From Macrostomum lignano (Eukaryota): a stretch of DNA of 64,000 bases. The notes under the pieces are model-generated. The model ran no database searches and was not told the DNA's origin. It was given only the letters and a program-made list of their open reading frames with translations. The translations under genes and the position numbers were made by a program. This document shows positions 1 through 22,835 of this stretch, piece by piece (within the stretch, counting starts at the first letter, position 1; each line of letters opens with the position of its first letter). The DNA is taken from assembly GCA_002269645.1 (NCBI GenBank), contig NIVC01002654.1, forward strand, positions 88,711 to 152,710. Reading direction: 5' to 3'.

Positions 1-230
1 AACGTAGACATCTTTCTGGCCCATGCCGACCATGACGCCCTGGTGACGAGGCCGGCCAACCACGGTAGGGACGCTGGCCAAGAGGTTGGACCGGTTCGAC
101 ATCACGGCAGCTTTGGTTAGAAGCGAGCCGGAGTCCAACACCAGAGCCGGTTCGTCATTCCAGGAGTCTTCGTCCCGGTCATTGTCATCGTCAGATGATT
201 CAGCAGAAGCTGCTGCCAGGAGAGGCATAT
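1..230 (-). CDS. Actin-domain exon (N-terminal part of an actin fold), truncated by the window edge
   Basis: Translation 228->1: [76 protein letters not shown]. It matches actin ALVVDNGSGMCKA...[20 protein letters not shown]. Acceptor CAG at 233-231. Confidence 0.93.
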
Positions 231-3200
231 CTGCAGATCATATTGTAAGCTCTTACCGGTTATATTTGACATTTGACTCGCTTGACCGGGGAAGGAGACA
301 GCAGACACAACAGAATTGGAGACAGCAGACACAACAGGATTGGAGACGGCAGACACAAGATGATTGGAGACAGCAGACACAATAGGATTGGAGACAGCAG
401 ACACAACAGGATTGAAGACGGCAGACACAATAGGATTGGAGACAGCAGACACAACAGGATTGGAGACAGCAGACACAATAGGATTGGAGACAGCAGACAC
501 AACAACATTAGAGACAGCAGACACAACAACATTAGAGACAGCAGACACAACAAGATTGGAGACAGCAGACACAACAACATTGGAGACAGCAGACACAACA
601 AGATTGGAGACAGCAGACACAACAGGATTGGAGACAGCAGACACAACAGGATTGGAGACAGCAGATACAACAAGATTGGAGACAGCAGACACAACAACAT
701 TGGAGACAGCAGACACAACGGGATTGGACACAGCAGACACAACAACATTGGAGACAGCAGACACAACAACATTGGAGACAGCAGACACAACAGGATTGGA
801 GACAGCAGACAACAGGATTGGAGACAGCAGACACAACAAGATTGGAGACAGCAGACACAACAGGATTGGAGACAGCAGACACAACAGCTTTGGAGACAGC
901 AGACACAATAGGATTGGAGACAGCAGACACAACGGGATTGGAGACAGCAGACACAACAACATTGGAGACAGCAGACACAACAGGATTGGAGACAGCAGAC
1001 ACAACAGGATTGGAGACAGCAGACACAACAAGATTGGAGACAGCAGACACAACAAGATTGGAGACAGCAGACACAACAAGATTGGAGACAGCAGACACAA
1101 CAGGATTGGAGACAGCAGACAACAGATTGGAGACAGCAGACACAACAGGATTGGAGACAGCAGACACAACAGCATTGGAGACGGCAGACACAATAGGAAC
1201 AGGTAGCAGATTTAAGCTCAAAGGTTTCCTTCAAATTTTTCTCACGTTTTATTTTTCGCCGTTTCATTTTTTTAGCAGCCTCGGTTGGTTTGACAGCTTT
1301 TTCGGCCTCTGGTGAAGGGCCACGTCCGCCGCGTAGACGCATCACCAGGTGAACGGTGCAGCCCGGCGTCAGCCCTGCACTGGCAACAGTCCAGTCTGAT
1401 TCCAGCTGCTTTCCGTCAGCAACTAAACGAATCTGATCCACTGGGATGCGCTGCCGTTCGCTTATTGCCTCCTTGAGCTCAAGAATATTTTGATTGGGCG
1501 TAAGGCTAACTGTGAACTCTTCGCTAGTGAGCGTTCTCACTTTGACGGTGAATTTAGATGGAAGAGCTGCGGAATGAACAGGCTATTTCTGTACAATTTT
1601 TTGTCTAAATAAAAAATCTAACAAGCAATAACATCGAAAAAAAAATCTCAGACTCACATTTAGCATCAGCTTGCCGCATTTGTGCGGCTTTCCGATTCTG
1701 TTTAACAGACAGCACCACCGGGTGCTTGTCGTGAACGCCGGCCAAAAGCAGCGAAGCTTCCAGATCGTCAAACAGCCGAAGAGCTTCTTCGCTCTTTCCG
1801 GTGTTTGACAACTCCTGACCATCAATGATACCGTCGGCAATTTGCGCGAGAATTTCCGCCTAAAAAATTTAGACGAGTCATTATGAGAGTAACTATCCAT
1901 ATTGAGTTCTTTTTAATTCTGCGTCATTATAAAGTTTACTTTACGAGAAGGAAAAATGCCTCGTCAACTCCTTCCTTATAAAGAGGTAAAAAATTGGGAC
2001 AAATGCCTCGTCATCTAACAAACTCACAAGCCCGTCGCCAGCCTCCTTGATCGGTTCCCAGCCCTGTGTGGCTAAGATATCAACCTTCTCGTCGTCTAGC
2101 AAAGTTTGCAATCGGCCAGTCATGTCCGATTCAAATTTTTCGTCCTGTCAGAAATAGATAGCATTTACAATTAGTATATAACAATACCGGTCAGACAAAC
2201 CTTAGAGATTTAGTATATTGTGAAAGTGTGCTACTATATCATAAGGATAACGATTTCATCTACCTTTTCACGATCCTCAACCGCTACGAAGCTGGTAAAT
2301 TGGCAAGCCACTGAGTAGCGAATCGATAATTGAACCAGGTTGGCCTTCTGCTCCAGTCGCTTCAGCTGTAAATTTGATTGGGTTTGCTAATTTGTCACCT
2401 TTGAAATCTCAAATGAGTATACCTATTTTTATAGCTCTCTACCAATACGTTTATTGTGAACCTAATACGAGAATAACTTCAGTGGTGAACGCATCTGACT
2501 TTCGCACCAAAGACCCCAGGTTCGATTATGTGCGCGACCGCACATCACGCCAACAACACAAGAGCCAACCACGGGGGTCAGAACTGCTTGGCTCTTTAAA
2601 TGACTGCATGTCGCCATGAGTTGCGACAGTTTCTCAAGTCAGAACTTCATTTATATTAAATCATCTTTTCTTAGAAACTCTCCGATTTAACTCTACCGAC
2701 TTTTCCGACTTTTTAGTTACCTGATGCAGAGCCGGATCGGTATCCAAGCTGCCAGCCTCCCAGTCGGCAATGAGGCTCCTAGCAGCCAGGGCGTGCACCA
2801 TGGAGCCGGTGGTAAAGCATAGCTCGCTAGTGAACACCGTGCAGCTGACTCGACAGTCGCCAGCTTTGGCATGCAGTGTCGCTCGTTGACATCCGCGACC
2901 TTCGCGCGGCATCAAGCCATAGACAATCAAGCGCTGACCGTTGAACAGAGCCGACGGACAAGCAGGCGCTTGGCGCACTACAGACAACTCCTGACTGTCA
3001 CTGTTGTCATCATCGTCGTCAAGATGCCACTCAACGCTGAGCTCGGTAAGCGCCGGCGCGGTGAGCCGAGCAATCAGCTCGTCGGCCAATGCAGACCATT
3101 TTGAACGTCTGGCCGGGTCGAAAAATTCCACGGAACCGCCGGAACCGGCAGCTCCGGCCAGCGATCGGAGCCGGTGCCGGTCTGGCGAGGGTCCAACCGA

Positions 3201-6200
3201 GCAGGCCAGCAAACGCAGGTGCTTGTTAGCACCTGAAGCGGCGACAGCCAGTGTAGCCTCTTTCGCTTCGTAGTGTCCGTCAGAAATCAGCAGCACCGCG
3301 TGCGGTCCGAATTCGCGCAGTTGAGCCAGGTAAGCCAGGTAATTAGAAAGATTTGTGCCACCCATATTGGGTTTTGAGGCTCGGATGAATTCTAGACAGC
3401 GATTCTGGACGCTTTTCCTGGAAAATTTATAACTCGTGAAGTCAGCAAATGGAATTTTTGCAGTTTAAAAGACACCAAGAACGAAAATTTAAATGCACCT
3501 TTTTAATAGATGCAGTGAACACTATATTAACGAAAAATGGTCCTTTTAGAAAAAATGCTATATGCTATTTAAAAATGGTACGCTTGAATGTTAAACTCGG
3601 AGTTTACAACATTTGACCGCCGACCCAATAGCCCAGACCCTAATCTGAATTGTCGGCAGTCAGGATTGTCTTTTTACCACATATTTAAAGAAATCTAGTT
3701 ACTTTATAGCGCAAATTTAAAATGAATTTTATCAGATATCAAGAGTCTTTACTGTTTACTCTTTATGTACTCTTTAACGTATTGTACTTCCTGCTTTCAA
3801 AGCAAACAGAGATCGGTCTTAATGATTGTGGGAAGTATAGTTTCAAATGTCGGTTTTTCGTTTACAAAATACAAGGTCAAAACACAATATTTTTAGATTT
3901 ATCAAAGAAAGTTGCTTCCAAGACAGAAACTATAGTGTAAAAAAGGAGTGAAAGAGGGGGGGGGCGTAGCCCAGTGGTCTAACGCAGCGGTCTGATGTGT
4001 CAGCGGCCCATGCTCGAGTTCAAGTGCAGTCACATTTATTTTAGGGCTCAATTGAAATCTCGGCTTGGCTCTGCTCGTGCAATTAACGCCCTTGAGGCCC
4101 AACCCCCGAAGCACAGTGAACTTACATGCCTAACGATAAATAAAGATAATTCTCACCTGCCGACCGGCTGTGGCAGCGCAAAGCAATCCTCGAACTGCGA
4201 TCCGAACCGAGCCACGTTGACTCGAGTCCGCGCCGGCAGATGCCGCAACAGCAGCGCCGCCAGCCGCCTGGCGTCCACGCTTGGCTCGCCAGCCATTGAG
4301 CGGCTGCAATCTAACGCCAGGGTGACAACTCCGGAGCAATCCGAGGACGCTGACGATTCGAACTCTGGGTAGAAGCACACCATCAGAGCGTCGGGACCGC
4401 TGGATTGCAGCGAGTCGTCGGGCCGTTCGACCCACAGTCGGGGCGCGTTTATCTCGGCTAGGGACACCTCGAGGCGGAAGCCAAGCTCGCCGAGAGTCTG
4501 CTGTTGGCCCGGTGCCAGGCGAACAACCGAACAGGTCTCCGTGCGCTTCACCTGTTTGCAGCATTCAGAAACTCACAGTTCTAGTTGCGCTAGAGCTCAG
4601 TTATTTAAACTTATACTAGTAGCATTCATATTGATTTTTAGTTACTTTTTCCAACACCTCTACCAACTAACGACAACAAAAATGAATCTCCCTGTCCCCC
4701 ACTCTCTCCCTATCCCTCCCCCACTCTCTCCCTATCCTTCCCCCACTCTCTCCCTATCCTTCCCCCACTCTCTCCCTATCCCCCCCCACTCTCTCCCTAT
4801 CCCTCCCCCACTCTCTCCCTATCCCTCCCCACTCTCTCCCTATCCTTCCCCCACTCTCTCCCTATCCCTCCCCCACTCTCTCCCTATCCTTCCCCCACTC
4901 TCTCCCTATCCCTCCCCACTCTCTCCCTATCCTTCCTCCACTCTCTCACCATCCCTCCCCACTCTCTCCCTATCCTTCCCCACTCTCTCCCTATCCCTCT
5001 CCCACTCTCTCCCTATCCCTCTCCCACTCTCTCCCTATCCCTCTCCCACTCTCTCCCTATCCCTCCCCACTCTCTCCCTATCCCTCTCTCTCCCTATCCC
5101 TCTCCCACTCTCATCCCTCTCCCACTCTCTCCCTATCCCTCCCCACTCTCATCCCCTCTCTCTCCCTATCCTTATCTACTCTCATCCCTCTCCTCCCTAT
5201 TTTCAGCACTCTCACCCCTCTCTTCTCCTATCCCTCCCCCACAATCATCCCTTTCTCCCTGTCCATCACCCTCTCACCCCTCTAACTCCGCATCCATCAC
5301 CCTCTCACCCGCCCTGTGCTTCTCGCTCTTTTTTGCTAACAACTTTTTGCGCAGATTTGTAAAAAGCACCTGAAAAGTTTAAAATTTAAACCTGAATCTC
5401 ATGCGTTGGTGATATTAATCCCCTGATAGGATATGGCATCCTCAGACCGGCCTCCAGACTGAAAGCTCCAACTGGTCGTCTCACGGCGGCCGTGTCTGTC
5501 ACCTGCTGCAGGCTGTCATCAGCCGCTGAGGCCGTCTGCCAGGGCGCCGCGCTGCCGGGCAAGCCGAAGATCACCGCCTCGCCGCTTGGCTTCAACTCGC
5601 AGACGTAGCGAATTTTAATCAAAGCCGCCGTCCTTGCCGGCAGGTTGCCAATGGAAACGGTGAACACGTCGGGACTTTCGGCGGCCTGCTCCATCAGGTA
5701 GGCGCCTTTGCCGGCTGACACGGCTTCGCGATACTCGCGCCTGGCTTTCTCCTTCTCCTTGACAACTCCGACTACTCGTTTGGCGCCGATGTAGGCTTCG
5801 AAACCGCACACCGCGGCGCCTTCGCTCAGGGGAAACACGTAGCGAGCCTCCACAGGTGAGCTGCCAGTGTTGAAGAACTCTTGGAGCAGGACCACCTGGG
5901 CGGTTGCAGAGAGAGGGAGGGGTGCAGGGGTCCGCAAACTCCGGCCCGCAAAGCCTCTCTATCCGGCCCTCGGTTCTTTGAAACTTCACAATAGCAATCC
6001 AACCCGATCAAGGTTTGAGTCTCTTCTCAGGTCTCTCTCTCCCCCCTCTTCTACCTTTTCTCTTCTCTCCGCTCCGCTTCTCTCTACTCATCTCCCTTCT
6101 CTTCTCGTTCGTCTTCCCTCTCCTTGTTCCCTTCAATTCTATCATATCATCTGACCTGCAGTAATGATCAAAACTCTTCATCTGGCGATTAGAAACTGAG

Positions 6201-7125
6201 GGCCGATGTACACCTGTGTGAGCCTGCGTACAGTATCCGCAGGAGTCAGGGGCGATGGCTGCAGGCCAGTGTCACCGATTGCGTTGGATAATTGTTTATT
6301 ATTCCTCAATGTTGCCACAACCTTTTCTACACTTATTATCCAACTGTCAAAACTGTGGCTAAAATATTTTTTATTCTTACCTGAGCCACCAAGTCCACCA
6401 GGTTGGCGCGCACGTGCACCGAACGCAACGGCATTGGAGGTCCGCCCGAGTCGCTTAGCAACCCAAACTTTTGATCCGCAATTCGAATATTCAACTCCAG
6501 ATCGGTCAAATCCTCCACCTCGTCGTCTGATTCTTCATCATCAGGGATGCTGCACTGTTCCATCGTTGCCAGATTATCCATAGGCCGATCGCCGTCCAAA
6601 TAGAACTCCACAATGTACTCGAGCTTCTGCTGGGCCGAATCAAACACTGCGAACTCGCGATCGCTGAAGCCATTGTCATCATCAGCGTTGTTGGCTCCCG
6701 TCGAGATTGGAATCGACTCGACGCTCTGACAGTCAGCGGAGGTTGGTGAGCAGGCGGCGGCAGGCAGCGGCTGAGACACCCGCTGCACCCGGCCCAGGGC
6801 GACCGAGCACACCAGAGCCACGCGGCAGCCCAGGCCGGAGCCGTCGGCGCGGGGAGGCTCCGAATATTTGGCGGCCACCTCGATGTTGTCGGCGAAGTAG
6901 ATCCCGCGGCCGAGCTTGCCTGCGTGTCGGCGGTGCAGCAGCTGCTGGCCGGCTGGCAGGCGAGGCGGCAGGAGGCCTCTGCGAGGGGTTATCATTCAGG
7001 ATTTTAGGGACTCAAGACGGAGTTTGGTAGAGAGCTAAAAGCGCTGTACAAGAGCGCTAAGATAGACAGACAGACACACAGACACACAGACAGACACACA
7101 CAGACAAACAGACAGACAGACACAC

Positions 7126-7214
<89 letters not shown>

Positions 7215-7235
7215 TAGACAGACAGACAGACAGAC

Positions 7236-7332
<97 letters not shown>

Positions 7333-7343
7333 CTAAGACACTA

Positions 7344-7384
<41 letters not shown>

Positions 7385-7395
7385 CTAAGACACTA

Positions 7396-7436
<41 letters not shown>

Positions 7437-7511
7437 CTCTGACAGACAGACAGACACACAGACAGACAGACACACACACAGACAGACAGACAGACAGGCA
7501 GACAGACAGGC

Positions 7512-7579
<68 letters not shown>

Positions 7580-10500
7580 TGACTGACAGACAGAATCCCA
7601 ACACTGTTGTGAATGCAGGGGAGCGCTTCAAACTATCTATTACTACAAGCAGTACCGCCAGGCGCCATCTCACCTAGACAAAATGCCCACCAGATTCCTG
7701 CCAGACGAGCCATGAAACAGCAGCCGCACGTTTCCCAAATCTCGTCGAAAAACGGCGGCCTCTTCGCGTCGACCGACGGAGAAAATCCGGCGAACATTGG
7801 CGCCGGAGCCGATGCTGGATTCGTCGATTAATCGACGAACGACGGCCTCCTCGTCTGGGTCGGCCCGCTGGACAAATGCTTTGAGTGCGCGGCGCTTCAC
7901 CGAGGCTGGGGGTGACGGGCGCCAATTCGAGGCCTCCGTCACAGATAGAAGGTCGCGCATCAGCTGGGAGAAAGTCGATTGATTGATCGGGGATTCACTC
8001 ATTAGTTGATTGGTTGAATGACTGACTGTCTGACTGATTGAATGTTGATTGATTGATTGATTGATTGATTGACTGATTGAATGTTGATTGATTGATTGAT
8101 TGATTGACTGATTGAATGTTGATTGATTGATTGATGGATTGACTGATTGAATGTTGATTGATTGATTGATTGATTGACTGATTGAATGTTGATTGATTGA
8201 TTGATGGATTGACTGATTGAATGTTGATTGATTGATTGATGGATTGACTGATTGAATGTTGATTGATTGATTGATTGACTAACTTATTGAATGTTGATTG
8301 ACTGATTGACTGTTTGAATGTTGATTGATTGATGGATTGATTGACTTATTGTTGATTGTTTGACTGATTACTTGATTGACTGATTGATATTAACGGTTTG
8401 ATTGATTGATTGATTGATTGGTTTATTTCTTGATTAACAGGTGCCAGTATTATTATGTAGCCATTAGCGAATATACATGTAGAAGGGATATGTATTGGTT
8501 TAAAAGTGATAAAAACCAAAGGCTAGAAGACTGGTTTTTACCATTTTTATTGTTTTTTTCTTTACTTTGCATTAGACACTTGAATACTACAATTCTAACT
8601 CTTTATAGATGCCATAAAATCATAAAAGCTCGATGCTTCATACTAAATAATAAGTAAGTAGCTTATTATATTCTTTTCTTACAGCAGGGCACCTAAATGC
8701 ACAAATCAGAGTGATTAGTGTACATAGTTTAGGTGCACAGAGTATCCTTTTAATAAAAATACAAATCAATTAAACTGATATACAATTATTCTTAGGCGAT
8801 CATACTGCACTACTGTCAGTAAGCGAATATGGAAATAGATAATAAAATCGCCTACCAAGCAGACATCTGCGGCCAATCCGAATTTATAAGCCGAGTCCAG
8901 GCACCCGCCGCCACCGCTGCCGCATTTCAAAGCCGATTGAAACTGCTGGCAGAGCGAGTGCGAGTGATAATCCGGCTTGCCTGCGCTCTGCTGCTGGTAC
9001 TGCATCAGGACGCCTTCGGCTAGGTCCACCTGTCGGGTGTGTTGCAGTTTTATTCGCCACATATAACTTTTTTATACTTATAAGCCACTCTCTTCAGCAC
9101 TCGACTAAAGCGTGCAACCCTCTCCAAGTATTTAACTAAAGCGTGCAACCCTCTCCAAGTATTTAACTAAAGCGTGCAACCCTCTCCAACACTTAATTAA
9201 AGCGTGCAACCCTCTGCAGTACTTGGTCTAATGCACGCAAGCGTACTAAGCCCACACAAATAATGTACAGATTTATTTAAAAAGTACACAAAAAACTTTG
9301 CTTACATCGTCAATGGTGCAGCTCCGGCTCTGCATCAGGTGGCCCAGCCAACCCTTGCCACCCGCGCCTATGCTTTGAGAGGCTTGGCCCAGGAATTCCA
9401 GAGCCTCCTGCCAGCAGGCCTCAACGAACTGGTCTTCGCCGGAGTTCAACAGGCTGGGAGCAACTTGAGTCAGCGCCTGCGAGTGTTGGCCGGTATGGGA
9501 TCGGGTATTGTGAGGAGTTTTTGCCTCACTGATGTCTCACTGCTCTCTCCACACACTGGCATCTGTCCGCATTTCACACACTACATGCTGCAGTCTTCCC
9601 ACATGCTGCAGTCTCCCCACCCGTTGCAGTCTTCCCACCCGTTGCAGTCTTCCCACACGCTGAGGTCTCCCCACACGCTGAGGTCTCCCTACACGCTGCA
9701 GTCTCCCCACCGGTTGCAGTCTTCCCACACGCTGCAGTCTTCCCACACGCTGCAGTCTCCCCACCCGTTGCAGTCTTCCCACACGCTGAGGTCTCCCCAC
9801 ACACTGAGATCTCCCAACACACTGCAGTCTCCCCACACACTGAGGTCTCCCCACACGCTGACGTCTCCCCACACGCTGCAGTCTCCCCACCCGTTGCAGT
9901 CTTCCCACCCGCTGCAGTCTTCCCACACGCTGCAGTCTCCCCACACGCTGAGGTCTCCCCACACACTGAGATCTCCAAACACACTGAGATCTCCCAACAC
10001 ACTGAGATCTCCCAACACACTGCAGTCTCCCCACACGCTGAGGTCTCCCCACCTGTTGCAGTCTCCCCACACGCTGGAGTCTGTCTACATGCTGCAGTCT
10101 TCATACAGAAGTCCCACCGCACCACATCGTGGGTTCCCACGCCCAAGCCCCATCCCATACGCTAACTAACCTCTCTAAGCTGGTTCGAGCAGGATCGGAA
10201 CAGCGAAACTGGCAGGTCTCGGACGCGACTCAGCGGACACCATTTAGTCGAAGCAGGAGCTGAAGTCGTCGGCCCCAGACTGCCGCCGCTACCGTACGAA
10301 TCGGACAGATGAGCCAGCACATTCAGCGCGTTGGGAGCGTCCGGTATCACCCGCATGGACACGGGAACAAAGACCTGCGAGATATGATAATAATCAAAAT
10401 AGTAACTATAATAGTAATTAATTAGGATGCAGTACAGCAAAAGTACAAATGTACTTCAAGCTTAATGTTCGAACTAAAATACACGTGCGCCCTAAATTAT

Positions 10501-12764
10501 TCTAAGTACATTTAGCTTAAAAGTACAAACGCACATAGAAAGTGCATGTGTACTTTTAGAAAAATTAATAACTAAAAGAACCAATCGATACCTACCTCGC
10601 TTCCCTTGCTAGCATAGACAATGTACTGATTCTGTCCATCTATTTCGCCCGTGTACAGCTCCAACAGGCTGTAAGTCGCATTCTGAAATAATGAAATTCA
10701 ATTCATAAATATAATTGTAGTTCACAGAGCAAGGTAGAGCTTCTAACAAATCTCTGCTGACCTTGACAAAAATGGCGAACCGCAGCAGCTCGAATCGATC
10801 TGTTGGCGGTGATATCTTACTCGCCTCCGGAAAGTTGCTAACGTTTTGAACTCGAAATGACGGCGTGTCCGATTTCTCGGGCACTGATAGAATATTAAAA
10901 TAGGCTTCCATTGCGAAATTTGAAAAAAGTGTTTAGAAAAAGACACGGCAAGTTTCCTTTATTTTAACTGTATCCAAAAATTGATCCCTAAGTGCCGTTT
11001 TTATAAACGTGTGTCCAAGAGGGCCGTTCTATGAAAGTGTCACCAAAGGGGCCGTTTTATAGAAGTGTCCCCAAAAGGAACGTTTATAATATTGTCGCCA
11101 AGGGGAAGTTTTTAATTTAAAAAATCAACTCCGATAAGGAACCTCTGAAGCCTAAATGATATGAATCATTCAGTATTACATTTGAAATCTCAAATCAAAA
11201 ATAGTCTATAACCAAAAGACGAGTTCTCCCTAGACAAAATTGCTTCTGGTGACTCACCCCTAACGGCTCCTTTCTCAAACAGTTCGCTGGCCGATTTTCC
11301 AGCCGCCAGGAATTCGTCAGTTCCAATCGGACGACCAGCGGCTAAGCAGGCGTCGAGAAATCCGATTCGAACCACGGGCTTGCCAAGGCTGAGCGCCTGT
11401 CGAACTTTTGAGCACTGCAGGTCGACACCGTCGGATACCAGTAGGTAGTCAATCTGGTGAGTAGAAGGCAGGGAAAATCTGTTCAGCACTTTGATTCCCA
11501 ACCCTGCCAGCCAATCAGCGCACTGTCTTGTGTACACTGGCTGAGCCTTATCTAATATTAGCCAGCCAATCAGCGCACTGCTTGGTGTACACTGTCTGAA
11601 CCTTATCTAATATCAGCCAGCCAATCAGTGCACTGCTTGGTGTACACTGGCTGAGCCTTATCTAATATCAGCCAGCCAATCAGCGCACGGCTTGGTGTAC
11701 ACTGGCTGAGACTTATCTAATCTCAGCCAGCCAATGAGTGCACTGCCTGGTGTACACTGGCTGAGCCTTATCTAATCTCAGCCAGCCAATGAGTGCACTG
11801 CCTGGTGTACACTGGCTGAGCCTTATCTAATCTCAGCCAGCCAATGAGTGCACTGCTTGGTGTACACTGGCTGAGCCTTATCTGATCTCAGCCAGCCAAT
11901 CAGCGCACTGCCTAGTTTACACTGTCTGAAACATTCCATATTATAATACCACAGCGAATTACCTTCCTAGTGACAATGCAGGACACAATGCCGCCATTGG
12001 TCATGATTAATCGTCGATAATTCTGCTTGTCTTTGGGCCGAACGCCGCTGTCCAACAATAGCGCGAATTGAAGGCTATTCAGTGGACCAGACGCTTGCAA
12101 AGGTGGAGCCTGAGCAGTTGAAGCAGTAGCCTCACCTGAGACTGAGCTGGGCACGCCAATATTCTTGAGTGTTGGGAACAAGATTAAGAGGCTAATAGTT
12201 AATTTGAGCATTCTCATTGGATAGATATCCAAATAAAGGTAACTGAAAATAATTCTCTCACCAGCGATAGAGGAAGAGGCTTTGCAGCAGAACTAATGCT
12301 TGGCTTGGTCAGCGAGTGCAACTTTGCTGTTGATGGAAGCAGAGATGGCAATGCATATATACTAGGAAATTTTAAATTTCATAATAAACCAGACTATTCT
12401 AAAGAGAGATTTAGGGCCCAACAGTTTGGGATATTTTTAGCCAATCCTACAAAACAGCCAATGCTTTAGTGTTGCGTGGTTGCAAAATTGTAAGTAATAT
12501 TAATAATATCTTACTTGACTGCATTTGTGGCTGGCATTTTGACAAGGCAGACATAACTAGCTTTGTTGAGTTGTTGTCAGCGCCAATCACTGGCTTTGGT
12601 TTTGAAGCATCCTTTCTAATTGAAGACACCTGCAGCTCTGTGGCCTGATTAGACTTAAAAGTGTCATGGCTTTGGGTTGTTGTAGGAGCCAGAAATTGGA
12701 AAACTGGATGCAATTCAGGCATGGTTGTGGAATAACATTTGCATGCAAATATTTTGGACACTTG
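1..12764 (-). CDS. PARP4: Vault PARP (PARP4-like) multi-exon gene with fused C-terminal ubiquitin-like and actin domains; 3' end runs off the window
   Basis: Predicted exons (minus strand, GT-AG, phases compatible): 12764-12515 (uncertain), 12135-11963, 11453-11258 (BRCT), 10883-10762, 10374-10171, 9476-9306, 9029-8856, 7963-7674, 6978-6381 (catalytic LLFHGS...GRGIYFAD...DREFAVF), 5895-5392 (VIT: EARYVFPL...FEAYIG), 4551-4157 and 3417-2721 (vWA: [20 protein letters not shown]), 2365-2264 ([10 protein letters not shown]), 2144-2028, 1859-1658, 1566-1246 (Ubl), 230-1 (actin). Motifs follow human PARP4 in order. The N-terminus and the last two junctions are the least certain parts. Confidence 0.9.
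295..1198. repeat. 24-bp intronic minisatellite (GGATTGGAGACAGCAGACACAACA)n
   Basis: Direct tandem units visible; produces spurious ETADTTGL / RHNRIGDS ORFs. Confidence 0.95.
1246..1566 (-). CDS. Ubiquitin-like domain exon (Ubl 1552-1325) plus basic linker
   Basis: [76 protein letters not shown] aligns without gaps to 76-aa ubiquitin, 30/76 identical by hand count. Acceptor ttccgCAG at 1569-1567; donor GTGAGA at 1245. Confidence 0.92.
3956..4145 (+). mobile_element. SINE family B copy (tRNA-like head, 3' truncated)
   Basis: GGGGCGTAGCCCAGTGGTCTAACGC head with an A-box-like motif. Body CAAGTGCAGTCACATT...GCAATTAACGCCCTTGAG is shared with 18700-19030 and 38381-38741. Confidence 0.75.
4690..5170. 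repeat. ~21-bp pyrimidine-rich minisatellite (CCCCACTCTCTCCCTATCCCT)n
   Basis: Direct tandem units inside a PARP4 intron. Confidence 0.95.
7061..7590. repeat. (GACA)n microsatellite
   Basis: Visible tetranucleotide run. Confidence 0.97.
7990..8420. repeat. (GATT)n-derived microsatellite with a higher-order unit
   Basis: Recurring GATTGATT...GACTGATTGAATGTT. Confidence 0.95.
9098..9215. repeat. 30-bp tandem repeat (ACTAAAGCGTGCAACCCTCTCCAAGTATTT), about 4 copies
   Basis: Visible direct units. Confidence 0.85.
9575..10090. repeat. 18-bp minisatellite (CACGCTGCAGTCTCCCCA)n
   Basis: Visible direct units in a PARP4 intron. Confidence 0.95.
11506..11915. repeat. 55-bp minisatellite (GCCAGCCAATCAGCGCACTG...GTGTACACTGGCTGAGCCTTATCTAATCTCA)n
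   Basis: Unit starts at 11506 and 11561 give a 55-bp period; lies between the two BRCT exons. Confidence 0.93.
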
Positions 12765-14957
12765 CTATGAGCTTATAATATTATAGGCCAACTAATTATA
12801 TTTGTTAATTATTAATGCTATTAAGTTACTTAGTTGCATGGGGGTTGCAGCTTGGCATACTTGGCTTAAAGCAAAATTGTTACATAGCTAGCAAGGAATT
12901 CCAAATTAGTCCTCTACTTGTTCTTCTATATTGGTATTATATTCAGATTATTTCAAATATACTCAACATTTATTATCAACAACATTGAAAGTCATTGTAA
13001 AAATTATTCAACATACACAGTTATTATAAGTTATATAGATAATCCAGCCAAAAAAATATATTATTTATGTTTTTTTGATTTTACCTAACTTTTCACTTAA
13101 GTCATATTGTCTAAAATGCAAGGCATTATTTAAAAGTGAGGTAGTTATTTAATTCCTAATTATTTTTATTTCTCTTGGATAAAGCACCCATTAATAAATG
13201 ATTAAGAATTCTTTACAGCAATTTTTTACTATTGACAACATATAATATATTTGAATGATTGATCATTCTTCTATTATTGTTTGATTATATTTAAAAATAG
13301 TTTAATAATATGGGTAAATAATAATTCATAAAATTGGGAGACATTTTTTTAAGTTAAAAATAATGATTTAATAGCCTATGGCAATGACTCAATAAGAAAG
13401 TTGCAAGTGTATAAGAATATAATAAGATCCCTTAAACAAAGTTTGTCCCAAAAAACTATATAGTTGTGATTATATTACTCTAGTAGGTAAAAACAATTTA
13501 AAAACTTGAATATTGAAAAAAAATCGTCTATGGGTGCTGATTTGCAGAAAATGTAGCAATATTAATAGGCCTATAACGTACTTGCGAACAATGTCATTAT
13601 GTCAATAAAGATACTTAAATAAAACAGTGAAGCAACAAGGCATTTAAAGATACTAAACTTAAAAAAATGAATTAGGAAGAACCATAGGATCTAGAGTGGA
13701 CTAAAAATAAGTTGTAATAACGCGAAAGCAGTTCTTTGCATTAAGGAAGAAGTAAGAACCGAGGAAAGGAACCAATCCTGGTTAGAAAAAAGGATTATGA
13801 AATCATGCCCTCAATAACAATAGCAGCCAATGTATACACTTTTTGCTTCCTAACTAAAATTAAAGTTTTTTTTAAACGAATATTGCATATATTTTTCGCC
13901 CGTAACCTGTTATTTCCAGAGAGAAACTGGTATATCTACACAAGTGACTAATCAAAACGCAATCTGAAACTTATAGATCCTCGCCGGGATATCCTGGAAA
14001 TTGGACATTTCAAATTTTAGATGAAATATTTTTATACCAATGTAGTAAAAACTTGGCGCACTTTTAAATTTCATATACTTTTTTGTTCAGGCTAAAGTAT
14101 TTGTTTTCAATAAGAAAAAATAACTTTTAAAAATGTTTTTTATTTGTTGAGATGGTGAGTTCTCTTTTTTAAAAAGCATTCTTTGTTCCCGGAAATAGAA
14201 TTCGTCGGTCGGTCCAAGGCGCAAGTTAGTTAGCAACATATGTGTTCTGGTGTTAGACATGTCACCTTTTTAGTAGTCGTAGTTAATTTAGCAGCATATG
14301 AGTAATATATCACTTAGTAAATCGCTTTTTTTAAGTGGCTAGAGTTTTTTATTATTGTTAAAAAATCATGCGTCACCTCACATGTCATAATTGATTTCTA
14401 TTCTATAAATAACCATGCCTAACAATCCTAACATGCATGCTTCGCATGTTCAGTTTTTGGAAATAGGCCATAGGTCTAGCCTACTTCAGTAATAATAGTG
14501 TTATTTATAATTAGTAAAAATGTATAGAAAATTCCTAAATACAATGTCAATGTGGTTTGGTGTATTCATACATATTTGTAAGCTAATTTAGGCCTACCAA
14601 ATTAATTTACTAAAGAAATAAGTATTTATTGAACATTGCAAGAATTATAGGGATTTAGGATTCTAGGAATTTAAGAATAAACTATCTACTTTGCTTAGGC
14701 CCTAAATCTAATGTTGCTAAGAGTAAAGTATACACTGCAAAAATGCCAAATAGGGGCCTTAATTTAAAAAAATATTGATATCTAAAAACAACAAATAAAT
14801 GAATTAGACCTAATTCTAAGCAAATCAATATTGATAAATACTACCTAATTTTTATATCCTAATAAAATACTTCACTAAAACCTACCAACATATGCTAGGA
14901 GCATATATTGATATATGCTCTATTCTTTGCTCTATTTGACGCATTTATAGACCTATA

Positions 14958-15675
14958 NNNNNNNNNNNNNNNNNNNNNNNNNNNNNNNNNNNNNNNNNNN
15001 NNNNNNNNNNNNNNNNNNNNNNNNNNNNNNNNNNNNNNNNNNNNNNNNNNNNNNNNNNNNNNNNNNNNNNNNNNNNNNNNNNNNNNNNNNNNNNNNNNNN
15101 NNNNNNNNNNNNNNNNNNNNNNNNNNNNNNNNNNNNNNNNNNNNNNNNNNNNNNNNNNNNNNNNNNNNNNNNNNNNNNNNNNNNNNNNNNNNNNNNNNNN
15201 NNNNNNNNNNNNNNNNNNNNNNNNNNNNNNNNNNNNNNNNNNNNNNNNNNNNNNNNNNNNNNNNNNNNNNNNNNNNNNNNNNNNNNNNNNNNNNNNNNNN
15301 NNNNNNNNNNNNNNNNNNNNNNNNNNNNNNNNNNNNNNNNNNNNNNNNNNNNNNNNNNNNNNNNNNNNNNNNNNNNNNNNNNNNNNNNNNNNNNNNNNNN
15401 NNNNNNNNNNNNNNNNNNNNNNNNNNNNNNNNNNNNNNNNNNNNNNNNNNNNNNNNNNNNNNNNNNNNNNNNNNNNNNNNNNNNNNNNNNNNNNNNNNNN
15501 NNNNNNNNNNNNNNNNNNNNNNNNNNNNNNNNNNNNNNNNNNNNNNNNNNNNNNNNNNNNNNNNNNNNNNNNNNNNNNNNNNNNNNNNNNNNNNNNNNNN
15601 NNNNNNNNNNNNNNNNNNNNNNNNNNNNNNNNNNNNNNNNNNNNNNNNNNNNNNNNNNNNNNNNNNNNNNNNNNN
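14958..15675. other. Assembly gap (718 N)
   Basis: Run of n. Confidence 1.
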
Positions 15676-18068
15676 TTGAATTCATCTCTCCAGTTTCTGC
15701 GTAGAATCAGAGTTGTTTGACCGGCCTTCAATGGCTTCAGCCGCTAGCCCAGCTTCAATTGAATTCATCTCTCCAGTTTCTGCGTAGAATCAGAGTTGTT
15801 TGACCGGCCTTCAATGCTTCAGCCGCTAGCCCAGCTTCAATTGAATTCATCTCTCCAGTTTCTGCGTAGAATCAGAGTTGTTTGACCGGCCTTCAATGGC
15901 TTCAGCCGCTAGCCCAGCTTCAATTGAATTCATCTCTCCAGTTTCTGCGTAGAATCAGAGTTGTTTGACCGGCCTTCAATGGCTTCAGCCGCTAGCCCAG
16001 CTTCAATTGAATTCATCTCTCCAGTTTCTGCGTAGAATCAGAGTTGTTTGACCGGCCTTCAATGGCTTCAGCCGCTAGCCCAGCTTCAATTGAATTCATC
16101 TCTCCAGTTTCTGCGTAGAATCAGAGTTGTTTGACCGGCCTTCAATGGCTTCAGCCGCTAGCCCAGCTTCAATTGAATTCATCTCTCCAGTTTCTGCGTA
16201 GAATCAGAGTTGTTTGACCGGCCTTCAATGGCTTCAGCCGCTAGCCCAGCTTCAATTGAATTCATCTCTCCAGTTTCTGCGTAGAATCAGAGTTGTTTGA
16301 CCGGCCTTCAATGGCTTCAGCCGCTAGCCCAGCTTCAATTGAATTCATCTCTCCAGTTTCTGCGTAGAATCAGAGTTGTTTGACCGGCCTTCAATGGCTT
16401 CAGCCGCTAGCCCAGCTTCAATTGAATTCATCTCTCCAGTTTCTGCGTAGAATCAGAGTTGTTTGACCGGCCTTCAATGGCTTCAGCCGCTAGCCCAGCT
16501 TCAATTGAATTCATCTCTCCAGTTTCTGCGTCGAATCAGAGTTGTTTGACCGGCCTTCAATGGCTTCAGCCGCTAGCCCAGCTTCAATTGAATTCATCTC
16601 TCCAGTTTCTGCGTAGAATCAGAGTTGTTTGACCGGCCTTCAATGGCTTCAGCCGCTAGCCCAGCTTCAATTGAATTCATCTCTCCAGTTTCTGCGTAGA
16701 ATCAGAGTTGTTTGACCGGCCTTCAATGGCTTCAGCCGCTAGCCCAGCTTCAATTGAATTCATCTCTCCAGTTTCTGCGTAGAATCAGAGTTGTTTGACC
16801 GGCCTTCAATGGCTTCAGCCGCTAGCCCAGCTTCAATTGAATTCATCTCTCCAGTTTCTGCGTCGAATCAGAGTTGTTTGACCGGCCTTCAATGGCTTCA
16901 GCCGCTAGCCCAGCTTCAATTGAATTCATCTCTCCAGTTTCTGCGTAGAATCAGAGTTGTTTGACCGGCCTTCAATGGCTTCAGCCGCTAGCCCAGCTTC
17001 AATTGAATTCATCTCTCCAGTTTCTGCGTAGAATCAGAGTTGTTTGACCGGCCTTCAATGGCTTCAGCCGCTAGCCCAGCTTCAATTGAATTCATCTCTC
17101 CAGTTTCTGCGTAGAATCAGAGTTGTTTGACCGGCCTTCAATGGCTTCAGCCGCTAGCCCAGCTTCAATTGAATTCATCTCTCCAGTTTCTGCGTAGAAT
17201 CAGAGTTGTTTGACCGGCCTTCAATGGCTTCAGCCGCTAGCCCAGCTTCAATTGAATTCATCTCTCCAGTTTCTGCGTAGAATCAGAGTTGTTTGACCGG
17301 CCTTCAATGGCTTCAGCCGCTAGCCCAGCTTCAATTGAATTCATCTCTCCAGTTTCTGCGTAGAATCAGAGTTGTTTGACCGGCCTTCAATGGCTTCAGC
17401 CGCTAGCCCAGCTTCAATTGAATTCATCTCTCCAGTTTCTGCGTAGAATCAGAGTTGTTTGACCGGCCTTCAATGGCTTCAGCCGCTAGCCCAGCTTCAA
17501 TTGAATTCATCTCTCCAGTTTCTGCGTAGAATCAGAGTTGTTTGACCGGCCTTCAATGGCTTCAGCCGCTAGCCCAGCTTCAATTGAATTCATCTCTCCA
17601 GTTTCTGCGTCGAATCAGAGTTGTTTGACCGGCCTTCAATGGCTTCAGCCGCTAGCCCAGCTTCAATTGAATTCATCTCTCCAGTTTCTGCGTAGAATCA
17701 GAGTTGTTTGACCGGCCTTCAATGGCTTCAGCCGCTAGCCCAGCTTCAATTGAATTCATCTCTCCAGTTTCTGCGTAGAATCAGAGTTGTTTGACCGGCC
17801 TTCAATGGCTTCAGCCGCTAGCCCAGCTTCAATTGAATTCATCTCTCCAGTTTCTGCGTCGAATCAGAGTTGTTTGACCGGCCTTCAATGGCTTCAGCCG
17901 CTAGCCCAGCTTCAATTGAATTCATCTCTCCAGTTTCTGCGTAGAATCAGAGTTGTTTGACCGGCCTTCAATGGCTTCAGCCGCTAGCCCAGCTTCAATT
18001 GAATTCATCTCTCCAGTTTCTGCGTAGAATCAGAGTTGTTTGACCGGCCTTCAATGGCTTCAGCCGCT
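15676..18068. repeat. 83-bp highly homogeneous satellite, about 29 copies
   Basis: Unit GAATTCATCTCTCCAGTTTCTGCGTAGAATCAGAGTTGTTTGACCGGCCTTCAATGGCTTCAGCCGCTAGCCCAGCTTCAATT. It abuts the gap. Confidence 0.98.
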
Positions 18069-19030: not shown

Positions 19031-21297
19031 GCATAGGGTTGCATAGGTCTGGCGAACAATCCGAGTCTTCGGATAATTCAATAGTGTTTAGTTTTTGCTC
19101 TTCAAGTATAGGTTATAGCCCGTACACTACTTTTACAGCACAAAATTTCGCTAACGAAAATGACTCACAACTACAAAGATGGGACTGTGAATTGCAGGAA
19201 GTGTCTCCTGCTGGCATCTTGTTGAACAGGCTCTCCACTTTCTACGAAATCTAATAGTCCGGGTAAGACTGGCTCTGGGTGCCGTCTACAAGGCCGTAAT
19301 TTGCATGTCTGCACTTCCACGGAAGCGCCGCATCGCCGACACTGCAGCAATATTTAGTTCGATCTCTCCTCTCGCGGTCTTTCGTCACTGCGTCTAGGGC
19401 ATTGCATTCGCCATTAGGCTTTTGACATATGATAGAAAATTTAATATGTTCAGCCCGTGCGATGATGGAGAAAAAATGTAGAATCGCACATTTGGATGCT
19501 GGATTGGGGTGAGAGAATTTGTCGGTTAGGAATAATTCGACACAGCTTCTATGCGACACTACGGTGCTTGTGGCGCGTTTGCCTTAGTGCCTATGCTGAT
19601 GCGAACTGGCGGCTCAGCACGGTCGGCAAATTCGATTTAGTGCTGTCGCCAATTTTGTAGCTGTCCTCTTCTCGCCCATTTTTTGCTCAGCTGTGGTCTT
19701 GCCATCTCGACGCTCGTCGGTTTTTTTGGTCTTCGGTCATTCCAAAGCAGACGAGCGCTTCTGCAAGCTTCTATTGTTAGCCTGACGGAATCAAATGTTG
19801 CCGTCTTTATCCGAGGTGCCTGTTGGTAGACAGCGGTGTCTGGCGGGTTTTAATGCGCCTGTCCATCCGAAAATGAATATTGCATGACAGTGTTTCAGCA
19901 GCTGAAAATCTGCTTTTAGATTGACCCTGCCAACACTGGCATGGGTCTGGCCTTGCGCCGCATCGATTTATCGGGAATCAAACGCTTCCCTAATCTCTCT
20001 TATTTATTTCTCCCTCCCGTTGCTGCCGGCCACACTTAGCTGACTCTACCCTGCTTTCTCTGTTTTTCTCATCCCTGCCAACCCTCTCTCAGTTCTATAG
20101 GCTTCTCTATCTTTTTCTATTCTCGCCTGCTACCACTCGGCGCTTTCCAACGCCTGGAGGGCCTCGCGTTTGAAATGATAAATCAGTTGGATGCGGGGTC
20201 TCTATCCCTCTCTATTCCCGTTCCCATCTATCCCTGCCTGCGAGCTGTTTGTCTCTATGGCTCCCCAGCTCAGATAGCCGTTCCACCCCCCTCTCCTAGC
20301 CATCCGATATCCCACAACAGCACACCCCGTCCCCAATCTTGGCCCTGGCTACTGCAAGCCTCTATAGTCTGCTTTCTTTCACTCTCTTCCCCCTATCAAC
20401 CATTTCTTTGGTTTCCTCTCTCAGCTGCTCTGCTGCAGATGCATAGATCTGCTGGCGCATATGCTAGGTTGCTAGTGATGAAACCTAACGCATGTCTGTG
20501 ACAGCCAACATAGTAAAAGGGGGTAGTGATCACTTCGTAGCTTCGTAAGGCTTTAAAGCTTTGTAGACATTTGCTAGACAACACAGTGCGACTCAGTATA
20601 ACTGACTATAGATATGATCTGAAGCCATCAGAATTCGTTTTGCTGAAGATCTGCTTAGCGCATAGGCACTAGACATACTGACATTATTGTAAGTGCAATG
20701 CCAAATGTACTAAGTGTTAAGCTTATCATTCCCAAGTTCCTGCTAAAGTTTGCTCTTGAAACAGATAAGGCTGATAATGGACTCGTGCAGTCTCTATATA
20801 ATAATACTAAATAAGTAGTATTTATGCTTACTCTTTTCTTACGGTATGCGGCCCCTGGGCGCTCCATTCAGATTATATTTCGCGAGCATCTCCTCGTGGG
20901 ACATTGCGGTGTGCCGCCATTCGTCTCGCTTTCTACTTTTCGTCCCGTTTGCCTCCCTTCTAGCTACCGGCTGGCCTCTTGTTTGCCGCTTGAAAAATGA
21001 ATTTTCTTCTGCCCTCGCTGCATTATACACGAACCATGTATGTATCTCGCGTTCCTTTGGGATTGCCGCCGTCTCTAGTCTTATTTCAATATTTCCTTTT
21101 GACTCGGTGCTCTTGTCTTTTTTATTTTTGTATTTCATTTTATTCCCTTTTCCCGTCCGCAATCCCCAGTGGCGGCTGCCGTGATTTTATGCTAATAATG
21201 TCAGGACTGAATGCTACGGGCCATGCGATCTGATCTATGTTCCCTATCTCCGATAATAATCTGACTTTGCCCCCCGTTTTTCACTACAAACTTGCAG

Positions 21298-22835
21298 CTA
21301 TGGCGACATTGTGCCGTCCACCATTATCGGCAAAATAGTTGGCGGTGTCTGCTCTTTATCCGGCGTCCTTGTTATCGCCCTGCCCGTGCCAGTCATTGTG
21401 TCGAATTTTTCCCGCATCTACCATCAGAATCAGCGGGCAGACAAGCGTAAGGCGCAAAAGGTACGTCATTTATTATTATTACTTAAACTATATGCAAGTC
21501 CAGCAGCTGCACATCACCTTCTCAGTGTTCACGGTCTCTTCATTGATCCATCTATGCCAAGTTGCACCATAGTTGAATGGTAAATGCTAAGAAATGCCAG
21601 TTGGTGCATAAGGGCCTCCCAAATTATGCGATTGTGCTCAAAGGTAATCAATGTTTGCAAATAATAGTCATTTCATCATCAGTATTGTTTAACCTCTGTC
21701 CAAAGTACCAAAATGGCAGTAAATTTAGTCTGCACCGAGCCTGATTGATTTTCACTTTCATGTCACTCTCCCAGAGCTGATTTCGAAGGCATAAGGACAT
21801 GCTGCTGCTCTCATTTCCTTTTGCATTTAACTTTTCCTGCAGAGAAGTTAGAGAGAAAAATACGAATGCATTTCTAATCTCAAAATCGATTATTATATTC
21901 AGGTGATTTTATTCCTCAAAGATTTCTATTTTTTAGCTAGACTTAATTATTTGACATCTCTCAACAAATGCAAATTTTGCGAACTGGAAGCAGCTTTCTA
22001 GTATTTACTTTGTTTTTGCGGCGCTTTAAATTCTCAAAATTGAGTACATACTCGTATCAAATCATAATTATAAAATTTTACCCATCAGTGTGCTTTGTGG
22101 CAGAGCAGCTCGGTGGTAAGCGCGTCTTGAGTCTCGCGCCACCACCCCTGCGCTAAACACATTGATTTGGGGCTTGTAAACGAATTAATTGGCCAAGAGG
22201 TTGGCGTGCCATTCACAGCCATGAGGGCCAACCCCCAAGGCATCACGATGCCTGACGGTTAGCAAGTCAGGGCCGCTGTACATTCTGTGTGAGAGTGTGT
22301 ATAAGTGCGTGCCTGCGTACAGCATTGGAGTCAGCGGAATGGGCAGAATCGCCTCACCGCTGATTGCGAGACGATGTCACCGAAGGCGTTGCGCCAGGGT
22401 GCCCGCAGTTCTGCGAATGGTTACTTGACCTTGAGTTGAGAGCCCCAGAATCTTATAAATGCTTAAATAGACCGACTGTGAGAACTATTCGTCTCCTGTT
22501 CTGTCGGCATTTGATCTTACGGTCTGCGAGGCCTGTCATGTCAACTCCAATCCGATTGTAGAAGGCCCGGCTGGCCCGGATTCGCATGGCTAAGAACGCC
22601 TCGGGTGCCGCTTTTATTAGCAGCAAAAAACGGGCCGAGGAGCGTCAGCGACTCCAGGAGACGGAGATTGGAGGCGCTGAATGCGGCAGCATCAGGGGCA
22701 GCGGCGCCGGCGACGATTCGGGATCGTCGGCAGACAGAAGGGAGGACGTGTTCGAATTGCAGCATCATCACCTGCTCACCTGCCTTGAGCGGACTACCGT
22801 GAGTGTAGATTAGAAGGCTAGAAGCACTGTCTGTC

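Follow-up and report, generated by a model that had tools for sequence, protein, structure and literature searches.

A vault PARP (PARP4) orthologue of the flatworm Macrostomum lignano with a ubiquitin-like domain and an actin fragment as probable inherited tail modules

Introduction

Does the vault PARP of a flatworm carry a ubiquitin-like (Ubl) domain and a piece of actin in its C-terminal part, and where would such modules come from? The question is raised by a stretch of 64,000 nucleotides (nt) of Macrostomum lignano DNA (GenBank assembly GCA_002269645.1, contig NIVC01002654.1, positions 88,711 to 152,710), which we refer to in its full length as the window. A gene resembling vault PARP (PARP4) lies at its beginning on the minus strand, and a first-pass annotation had read this gene as a fusion of PARP4, a Ubl domain and an actin domain, with an architecture of which it knew no earlier description. 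Our answer is that positions 1-12091 (minus strand) probably hold most of the M. lignano PARP4 orthologue, with the Ubl and actin-fragment modules as inherited parts of its tail. Judged by the comparisons below, the fusion is most likely genuine and of old origin, and not unique to this animal. The two modules would thus be neither a flatworm invention nor an accident of annotation, but parts of PARP4 that were lost or replaced in vertebrates.

The vault PARP clade is defined by BRCT, PARP, VIT and vWA domains (Citarelli, 2010; PMC2964712). Clade 5 PARPs of Salpingoeca, Capsaspora and Acanthamoeba have been reported with actin or actin-binding domains, in Acanthamoeba also with ubiquitin-related ones (Perina et al., 2014; PMC4245714). 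These PARP4-like proteins, which we know from the published description, have appended domains as in the flatworm, so that the architecture has in fact been mentioned before; moreover, RefSeq and UniProt entries for PARP4 of cnidarians and bivalves carry the actin fragment. The study of Perina et al. was a survey of domain databases and makes no mention of the actin part being a fragment, nor of flatworm, cnidarian or mollusc cases. In the searchable literature, we found no paper on an actin fragment limited to the DNase-I-binding loop (D-loop), on its invariance, on its fixed order with the ubiquitin and HSP70 pieces, or on mimics of the ribosomal P-stalk in these proteins. The flatworm gene itself is an ordinary PARP4 orthologue, and the pattern of modules across the family may matter more: a region that is of low complexity and evolves fast in mammals appears as conserved ubiquitin, actin, stalk and HSP70 pieces in cnidarians, molluscs, the flatworm and euglenozoans.

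A PARP4 orthologue with an open frame beyond the conserved region

Among solved structures, the best match for the flatworm gene is human PARP4 (PDB 11jf_P). With HMMER, residues 352-756 of the human protein were aligned at E 1e-82, the catalytic His, Tyr and Glu all being kept, and residues 762-1213 at E 4e-67. The flatworm motif DREFAVF aligns with the human sequence, completing the His-Tyr-Glu (H-Y-E) signature of PARP4, and a VIT domain followed by a vWA domain lies downstream of the catalytic domain, collinear with human residues 600-1213; precomputed Pfam matches to VIT, VWA and PARP exist for P0049, a UniProt model introduced below. The BRCT domain proposed in the first-pass annotation fared unevenly, in that the N-termini of other PARP4 proteins could be aligned to two exons (E down to 4e-7), while the match to a solved structure is weak (the BRCT domain of TopBP1, E 0.08). 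On its sequence, the gene is an orthologue of PARP4 and belongs to PARP clade 5A, as its collinearity with human residues 352-1213 bears out. The alignment ends at exactly the residues where the homology had been said to end. The upper boundary had been drawn at 12764 and has to be moved, as the first coding exon backed by homology is the BRCT exon that begins at 12091 and ends at 11963; candidate start ATGs lie upstream of it at 12217 and 12211.

The two proteins thus share the BRCT domain, the H-Y-E catalytic domain, VIT, vWA and the post-vWA region, and part ways beyond human residue 1213. In human PARP4, a stretch of low complexity comes next, and later the helical MINT domain (residues 1562-1724), which binds MVP (PMC12280208), whereas in the flatworm a helical exon leads to a ubiquitin-family domain, then to an acidic tract with an actin fragment, and finally to P-stalk-like motifs. 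Three junctions had been proposed on the way from PARP4 to the actin fragment, and we checked them by reading and translating the reverse complement of positions 1-2400. The first, 2028/1859, is in phase 0 and reads AAC GGG CTT/GTGAGT ... TTTTTTAG/GCG. The second, 1658/1566, is in phase 1 and reads GCT AAA T/GTGAGT ... TTCCGCAG/CT, with CCGCAG as acceptor and a Ser codon at the join. The third, 1246/230, is likewise in phase 1 and reads ATA AAA C/GTGAGA ... ATCTGCAG/AT, with CTGCAG as acceptor and a His codon at the join. Donors (GTGAG), acceptors (YAG) and phases all agree with what had been proposed, and so does the open frame, which spans 3456 nt or 1152 codons with zero stops down to position 1. 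It is formed by the ten exons that Table 1 lists from 7963-7674 to 230-1, every border of which conforms to GT..AG; the boundaries of the seven exons upstream of the 2028 donor were set by homology. At 1246/230, the agreement in phase would by itself be expected by chance in one case out of three.

The intron between the last two exons (231-1245) consists for 905 of its 1015 nt of a 24-nt minisatellite (294-1198, 37.9 copies), leaving 110 nt of non-repeat sequence. Besides three AG dinucleotides within 28 nt of the donor, this strand of the intron holds AG only at 889, 282, 278, 253, 251 and 232. The one at 232 (CAG) is the sole YAG with a pyrimidine tract before it and the only good acceptor.

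Other ends of PARP4 that this region might provide were considered and rejected as the main product. Without splicing at donor 1246, the frame stays open across the whole repeat to about 262, and such read-through would add about 330 residues of Cys/Leu repeat translation. Acceptor 889 yields a repeat-encoded tail. The acceptors at 282, 278, 253 and 251 are of the AAG or GAG type, and splicing at 282 leaves the actin frame and reaches a stop near 117.

The ubiquitin-like exon

Over its 106 residues, exon 1566-1246 matches ubiquitin/NEDD8 residues 3-76 at E about 1e-13 and ends its domain with HLVMRLRGG, so that the proposed Ubl with an RLRGG tail can be regarded as a genuine ubiquitin-family domain. 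It is identical to canonical ubiquitin at 30 of 76 residues, matches the Rad23 Ubl profile at E 5e-8 and is collinear with the ubiquitin domain of the homologue P0051 (locus L001, a metagenome contig). Its splice sites conform to the consensus, and its frame of 107 codons is intact. With its 321 nt it is in phase 1 at both ends, so that skipping it keeps the frame. The residue that follows RLRGG is Arg.

Ubiquitin with more polypeptide directly after RLRGG is also what characterizes the natural ubiquitin fusions, i.e. Ub-eS31 (RPS27A), Ub-eL40 and the ubiquitin-actin of chlorarachniophytes. In these, however, ubiquitin is N-terminal and cleaved off to free a whole functional protein, whereas the flatworm Ubl sits inside an enzyme, about 1300 residues from its start, and what comes after it is a fragment.

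As a separate observation, a PDB search gave a loose alignment of the basic linker past RLRGG (1246-1330, minus strand) with the part that ubiquitin-eS31 fusions carry beyond ubiquitin (query 7-106 against chain residues 3-99). This likeness may reflect a lysine-rich bias or may be a trace of an origin from Ub-eS31.

The actin fragment and the acidic tail

Within the window, exon 1..230 encodes 52 residues matching actin residues 4-55 at E about 1e-10, and here the window ends. The continuation can be followed in P0049, a UniProt model of 1196 residues that is 100% identical to the window exons by tblastn and hence represents the same locus. In this model, the match to actin covers only residues 4-63 and is followed by a non-actin acidic tail of 190 residues. 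The expectation that a complete actin domain could be assembled from the adjoining sequence is therefore not borne out: the continuation diverges past about residue 63, and the four-subdomain fold of some 375 residues is not reached. What is present corresponds to the D-loop and the strands that open subdomain 1. The phosphate-binding loop 1 is altered (DSGSLLTK in the window, DNGSGMCK in actin), and the actin fragments of other PARP4 proteins likewise replace N12 and G15. By its sequence, the flatworm segment is predicted to be unable to serve as a working actin.

Past actin residue 63, the P0049 tail resembles neither actin nor the human MINT domain, and a PDB search with the acidic tail, which is of low complexity, gave zero matches. 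It does hold, outside the window, two diverged copies of a P-stalk-like peptide, EDDEDFGTSLFDEAPP and DEYGRSLFEEP (EDFGTSLFDE and EYGRSLFEE; residues 1084-1092 and 1161-1169).

Public models of this gene and its copies end unlike each other (…CLTQID, …CLTDTN and …CLTDTI in the three M. lignano models), which suggests that they are truncated there. The flatworm models end in …PIRKESDEQCLT, which resembles the start of the HSP70 fragment of locus L001, LSIEKSDQTCVP; the gene may continue past the model ends toward a fragment of the HSP70 type.

Tail modules of PARP4 in other lineages

The strongest argument for assigning these modules to PARP4 comes from other organisms. The comparative set came from an exhaustive HMMER search in which P0049 was the query; the 150 best PARP4-like representatives were then scanned locally. 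A search with a profile of the PARP-VIT alignment returned mostly WGR-type PARPs and added nothing. A search with the spliced peptide of helical, Ubl and actin exons gave one M. lignano fragment and ordinary actins only, the word-based selection of candidates having missed the PARP4 homologues.

In this set, an actin fragment follows the post-vWA region in the PARP4 proteins of Nematostella vectensis (XP_032219397.2), Hydra vulgaris (XP_065649889.1), Mytilus edulis (CAG2205451.1) and Magallana gigas (K1PUC2). As in the flatworm, an acidic tract precedes it in each, and the piece comprises actin residues from about 4 to about 65, ending near residue 60-72. A 16-residue block of the D-loop is identical to actin at 16 of 16 positions in all five lineages, i.e. 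in these four and the flatworm, and its flanks have drifted (12-20 identities out of 31 before it, 5-13 out of 16 after it). A letter-perfect block amid drifting flanks in five lineages of cnidarians and bilaterians indicates selection, unless gene conversion with actin genes has kept it in shape. The mollusc and flatworm fragments, those of three spiralians, also have GSL in place of actin GSG. Because such non-actin residues are shared, the comparison points to vertical descent of the fragment with selection on the D-loop rather than to repeated capture. The models of these four animals lack a ubiquitin domain, unlike the flatworm gene. Further on, the Nematostella protein has Pro-rich repeats and then a MINT-like end, and that of Magallana a P-stalk-like motif and a fragment of the HSP70 substrate-binding domain.

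In 14 lineages the post-vWA region is followed, as in the flatworm, by a ubiquitin domain, among them Euglena gracilis, two Diplonema species (transcriptome assemblies), Sinanodonta, Biomphalaria, Plakobranchus and the organism behind locus L001. These embedded domains keep the (H)LVLRLRGG end and are identical to canonical ubiquitin at 27-59 of 76 residues. The residue after GG is mostly Pro, namely in eight lineages, where the flatworm has Arg, and the models of these homologues are without the actin fragment. At locus L001, a single open reading frame (ORF) of 1172 codons runs without interruption from VIT and vWA through ubiquitin and the acidic tail into the first part of the HSP70 substrate-binding domain, with collinear PARP catalytic motifs in upstream exons. 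The similarity to HSP70 resumes there across a short intron, past the called stop (10001-13519 and 13650-13900, plus strand). HSP70 substrate-binding fragments also stand at the end of the homologues P0066 (residues 1428-1530), P0166 (1885-1984) and P0151 (1981-2057). Where two modules co-occur, ubiquitin comes before the actin fragment, and both come before the HSP70 fragment.

The P-stalk motifs, too, are found beyond the flatworm. The C-terminal peptide of the P-stalk is SD[D/E]DMGFGLFD (PMC3280276). Several homologues hold plain copies of it in their tails, e.g. EEEDDDMGFGLFDDAPP (…DDDMGFGLFDD…); P0186, P0134, P0121, P0125, P0138 and P0066 are among the homologues with copies. The looser motif [DE][FYLWM]G..LF[DEG][DE] occurs in the tails of 15 out of 114 homologues, compared with 0.013 expected from shuffles. 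Since the PDB search with the tail was empty, the resemblance rests on this count and on the published peptide.

The same modules sit at the same place in PARP4 of other phyla, which is why we take them to belong to one protein in the flatworm as well.

Several observations weigh against reading both modules as inherited parts of this gene. In no single annotated homologue outside M. lignano are the ubiquitin domain and the actin fragment found together. The similarity between the M. lignano and L001 tails is modest and was reached by 9 of 1000 shuffles. In principle, the gene conversion mentioned above could account for the unchanged D-loop block. The MVP-binding domain for which a search had been proposed did not turn up: human MINT residues 1562-1724 are unmatched in the annotated M. 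lignano tail (P0049, beyond the window), so that association with the vault is putative here. To these are added the public models of the M. lignano copies and the features of the acceptor at 230, which bear on the first two of the following alternatives.

Alternative explanations

The first alternative accepts the join to actin, and holds that the Ubl exon is usually skipped or is a decaying pseudo-exon, so that 1658 is joined directly to 230 or 212. It draws on the UniProt models. Searching with the spliced C-terminal peptide recovered a 97% identical M. lignano protein, and a second search, the one that gave P0049, together with a cluster look-up yielded two further M. lignano copies, P0050 and P0058. 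All three models fuse PARP to the actin-like exon and skip the Ubl exon: P0049 and P0058 join 1658 to 230 (…RQADAK-Y-MPLL…), and in P0050 the acceptor lies 18 nt deeper in the exon, with exon start 212 (…RQADAK-S-ATAESS…). The symmetry of the exon would let the frame survive such skipping, and the Mytilus, Magallana, Nematostella and Hydra models likewise show the actin fragment without ubiquitin. The same models err elsewhere, however. Compared with the exons at 5392-5895 and 7674-7963, all three omit conserved segments of VIT and P0050 also omits the catalytic HGS motif, and the longer VIT and catalytic exons are backed by homology with human PARP4 and P0051. Because of these evident splice errors, the models seem to be poor guides and weak evidence either way on the skipping of the Ubl exon; public protein models of this gene miss that exon along with parts of VIT. 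A decaying exon is also hard to reconcile with consensus splice sites, an intact frame, clear similarity to ubiquitin with HLVMRLRGG retained, and the ubiquitin domains that 14 other lineages have in this position. We therefore consider habitual skipping unlikely, and isoforms with and without the Ubl may both be present.

The second alternative is an operon, in which the PARP4 mRNA would end upstream and the actin-like exon, beginning at the ATG at 228-226, would start a separate mRNA that receives a spliced leader (SL) by trans-splicing and encodes a small acidic protein; the join in frame would then be owed to the one-in-three chance given above. In M. lignano, 30% of genes undergo SL trans-splicing and 15% belong to operons, with a repeat-corrected spacing that peaks near 100 bp and an acceptor motif of [T/C]TNCAG (PMC8629364). 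The acceptor at 230, CTGCAG, fits YTNCAG, the ATG stands at +3, and an in-frame TGA (240-238) lies 8 nt upstream. The repeat-corrected gap of 110 nt equals the modal operon spacing of this species, an AATAAA is present at 1253-1248 inside the Ubl exon, and UniProt holds a separate model of 254 residues, P0001, that starts within the actin-like exon. Against this, P0001 is a frameshifted piece of the same tail, and the frame upstream has no stop before about 262, so that PARP4 would be left with no normal end. The consensus donor at 1246 (AAC/GTGAGA) is a strong cis donor upstream of the acceptor, a situation in which the rule given in PMC8629364 favours cis-splicing. Finally, the actin fragment lies inside PARP4 in four other animals. 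Of the features of an SL operon, then, 230 has the acceptor motif but lacks both the upstream stop and the freedom from a cis donor. No SL sequence was found in the window; hence there is no SL RNA gene here, which is uninformative on trans-splicing. On balance an operon appears improbable, and a minor internal SL-spliced isoform starting at 230 is possible besides the cis-spliced PARP4 mRNA that we favour.

According to the third alternative, which had been among the first-pass suggestions, a complete actin domain follows and the protein is a polyprotein from which a cut after RLRGG sets actin free. RLRGG is intact, the following Arg provides a cleavable context, the window edge is reached before the similarity to actin ends, and ubiquitin-actin fusions exist in chlorarachniophytes (PMC6332867). 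The actin match of P0049 nevertheless stops at residue 63, as it does at similar places in the four other animals, and the nucleotide-binding loop is replaced. Ubiquitin fusions with Pro right after GG are poor cleavage sites and resist deubiquitinases. Since relatives keep Pro in this position, a released polyprotein is argued against as the ancestral function, and processing of this kind finds little support in the family. Cleavage after RLRGG is possible in the flatworm protein with its Arg, yet the release of a complete actin would be highly improbable.

An assembly artefact, by which two unrelated loci were joined via the 24-nt minisatellite at 294-1198, has next to no claim left: its 905 nt of near-identical units are a classic site of assembly errors, but three M. 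lignano copies that differ in sequence have the same adjacency of helical and actin-like exons, the domain order recurs in other phyla, and minisatellites fill several other introns of this gene.

A possible function of the tail

If the modules are indeed parts of PARP4, cis-splicing would run past the post-vWA region through a lineage-specific helical exon, the Ubl exon, the 1-kb minisatellite intron and the exon for the acidic tract and actin fragment, and the polypeptide would continue beyond the window, as it does in the annotated protein, in an acidic tail with its two diverged P-stalk copies. The stretch from vWA to the vault-binding end may then be a flexible linker that displays small mimics of very abundant, very conserved hub proteins. 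The parts copied would be ubiquitin, the D-loop of actin and the tail of the P-stalk, joined in some species by the substrate-binding domain of HSP70. Such mimics would most likely serve as docking or bait modules, which either recruit the partners of the hubs to the ADP-ribosyltransferase or are recognised in the place of the hubs; docking or bait is also the simplest reading of the tail modules as such.

Ubiquitin, actin, the ribosomal P-stalk and HSP70 are hubs that the toxins and effectors of pathogens habitually attack. A further-reaching proposal, which we put forward tentatively and regard as rather doubtful, is that the PARP4 linker of non-vertebrate animals and some protists is a conserved string of hub mimics that acts as an integrated-decoy sensor, or as bait that draws the partners of the hubs into the vault. 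A decoy role had also been raised in the first-pass annotation, next to that of a putative cytoskeleton or vault tether. If true, this would tie the vault PARP to innate immunity or to the surveillance of translation and proteostasis. The modules suggest concrete candidate partners in any case: D-loop binders, translational GTPases or ribosome-inactivating proteins, ubiquitin receptors and chaperone clients.

Gene features and surroundings

The coordinates of the gene are collected in Table 1. Relatives of the helical linker exon were detected only among the M. lignano copies in our sequence searches, including those of the 150 best PARP4-like representatives.

Table 1. Features of the M. lignano PARP4 gene in the window, in the order of transcription
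Feature	Position	Strand	Basis
BRCT exon 1; reads ...IVSCIVTRK	11963..12091	-	tblastn with N-termini of Magallana PARP4 (E 4e-4) and Mytilus PARP4 (E 2e-3)
BRCT exon 2	11262..11462	-	tblastn with Nematostella PARP4 (E 4e-7) and Branchiostoma PARP4 (E 3e-6); weak TopBP1 BRCT match
PARP catalytic exon with His motif LLFHGSS	7674..7963	-	gene model and human PARP4 alignment
PARP catalytic exon (GIYFAD, DREFAVF; Tyr and Glu of H-Y-E), acidic linker and start of VIT	6381..6978	-	gene model and human PARP4 alignment
VIT domain exon	5392..5895	-	gene model and human PARP4 alignment; homology-guided borders differ from UniProt model P0049
vWA domain exon 1 (DCSRSM, MIDAS-type motif)	4157..4551	-	gene model and human PARP4 alignment
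vWA domain exon 2 and post-vWA conserved region	2721..3417	-	gene model and human PARP4 alignment
Post-vWA exon	2264..2365	-	gene model and human PARP4 alignment
Final exon homologous to human PARP4, donor 2028	2028..2144	-	alignment stops at human residue 1213
Helical linker exon, ends RQADAK	1658..1859	-	ORF translation and searches
Ubiquitin-family domain exon and basic linker	1246..1566	-	ubiquitin/NEDD8 match
Minisatellite intron, 1015 nt	231..1245	-	repeat and splice-site inspection
Acidic tract and actin N-terminal/D-loop fragment (ALVLDSGS...), cut by the window edge	1..230	-	actin match, E about 1e-10

Micro- and minisatellites (a 22-mer, (AGAC)n, (TTGA)n, an 18-mer and a 55-mer) occur in nearly every large intron of the gene (4695-5155, 7060-7594, 8006-8435, 9583-10100 and 11506-11929). 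Several of these repeats are open in all six reading frames, so that ORF lists are misleading there.

Directly upstream of the gene lies a very AT-rich stretch (12000-16000, GC content 0.21-0.33), compared with a GC content of 0.45-0.57 inside the gene. Further on, Rfam reports the potassium channel RNA editing signal K_chan_RES (RF00485) at 21292-21406 (plus strand) with 68 bits against a gathering score of 51 (E 1e-11), which probably marks a gene for a Kv-type potassium channel whose transcript forms a hairpin for ADAR editing.

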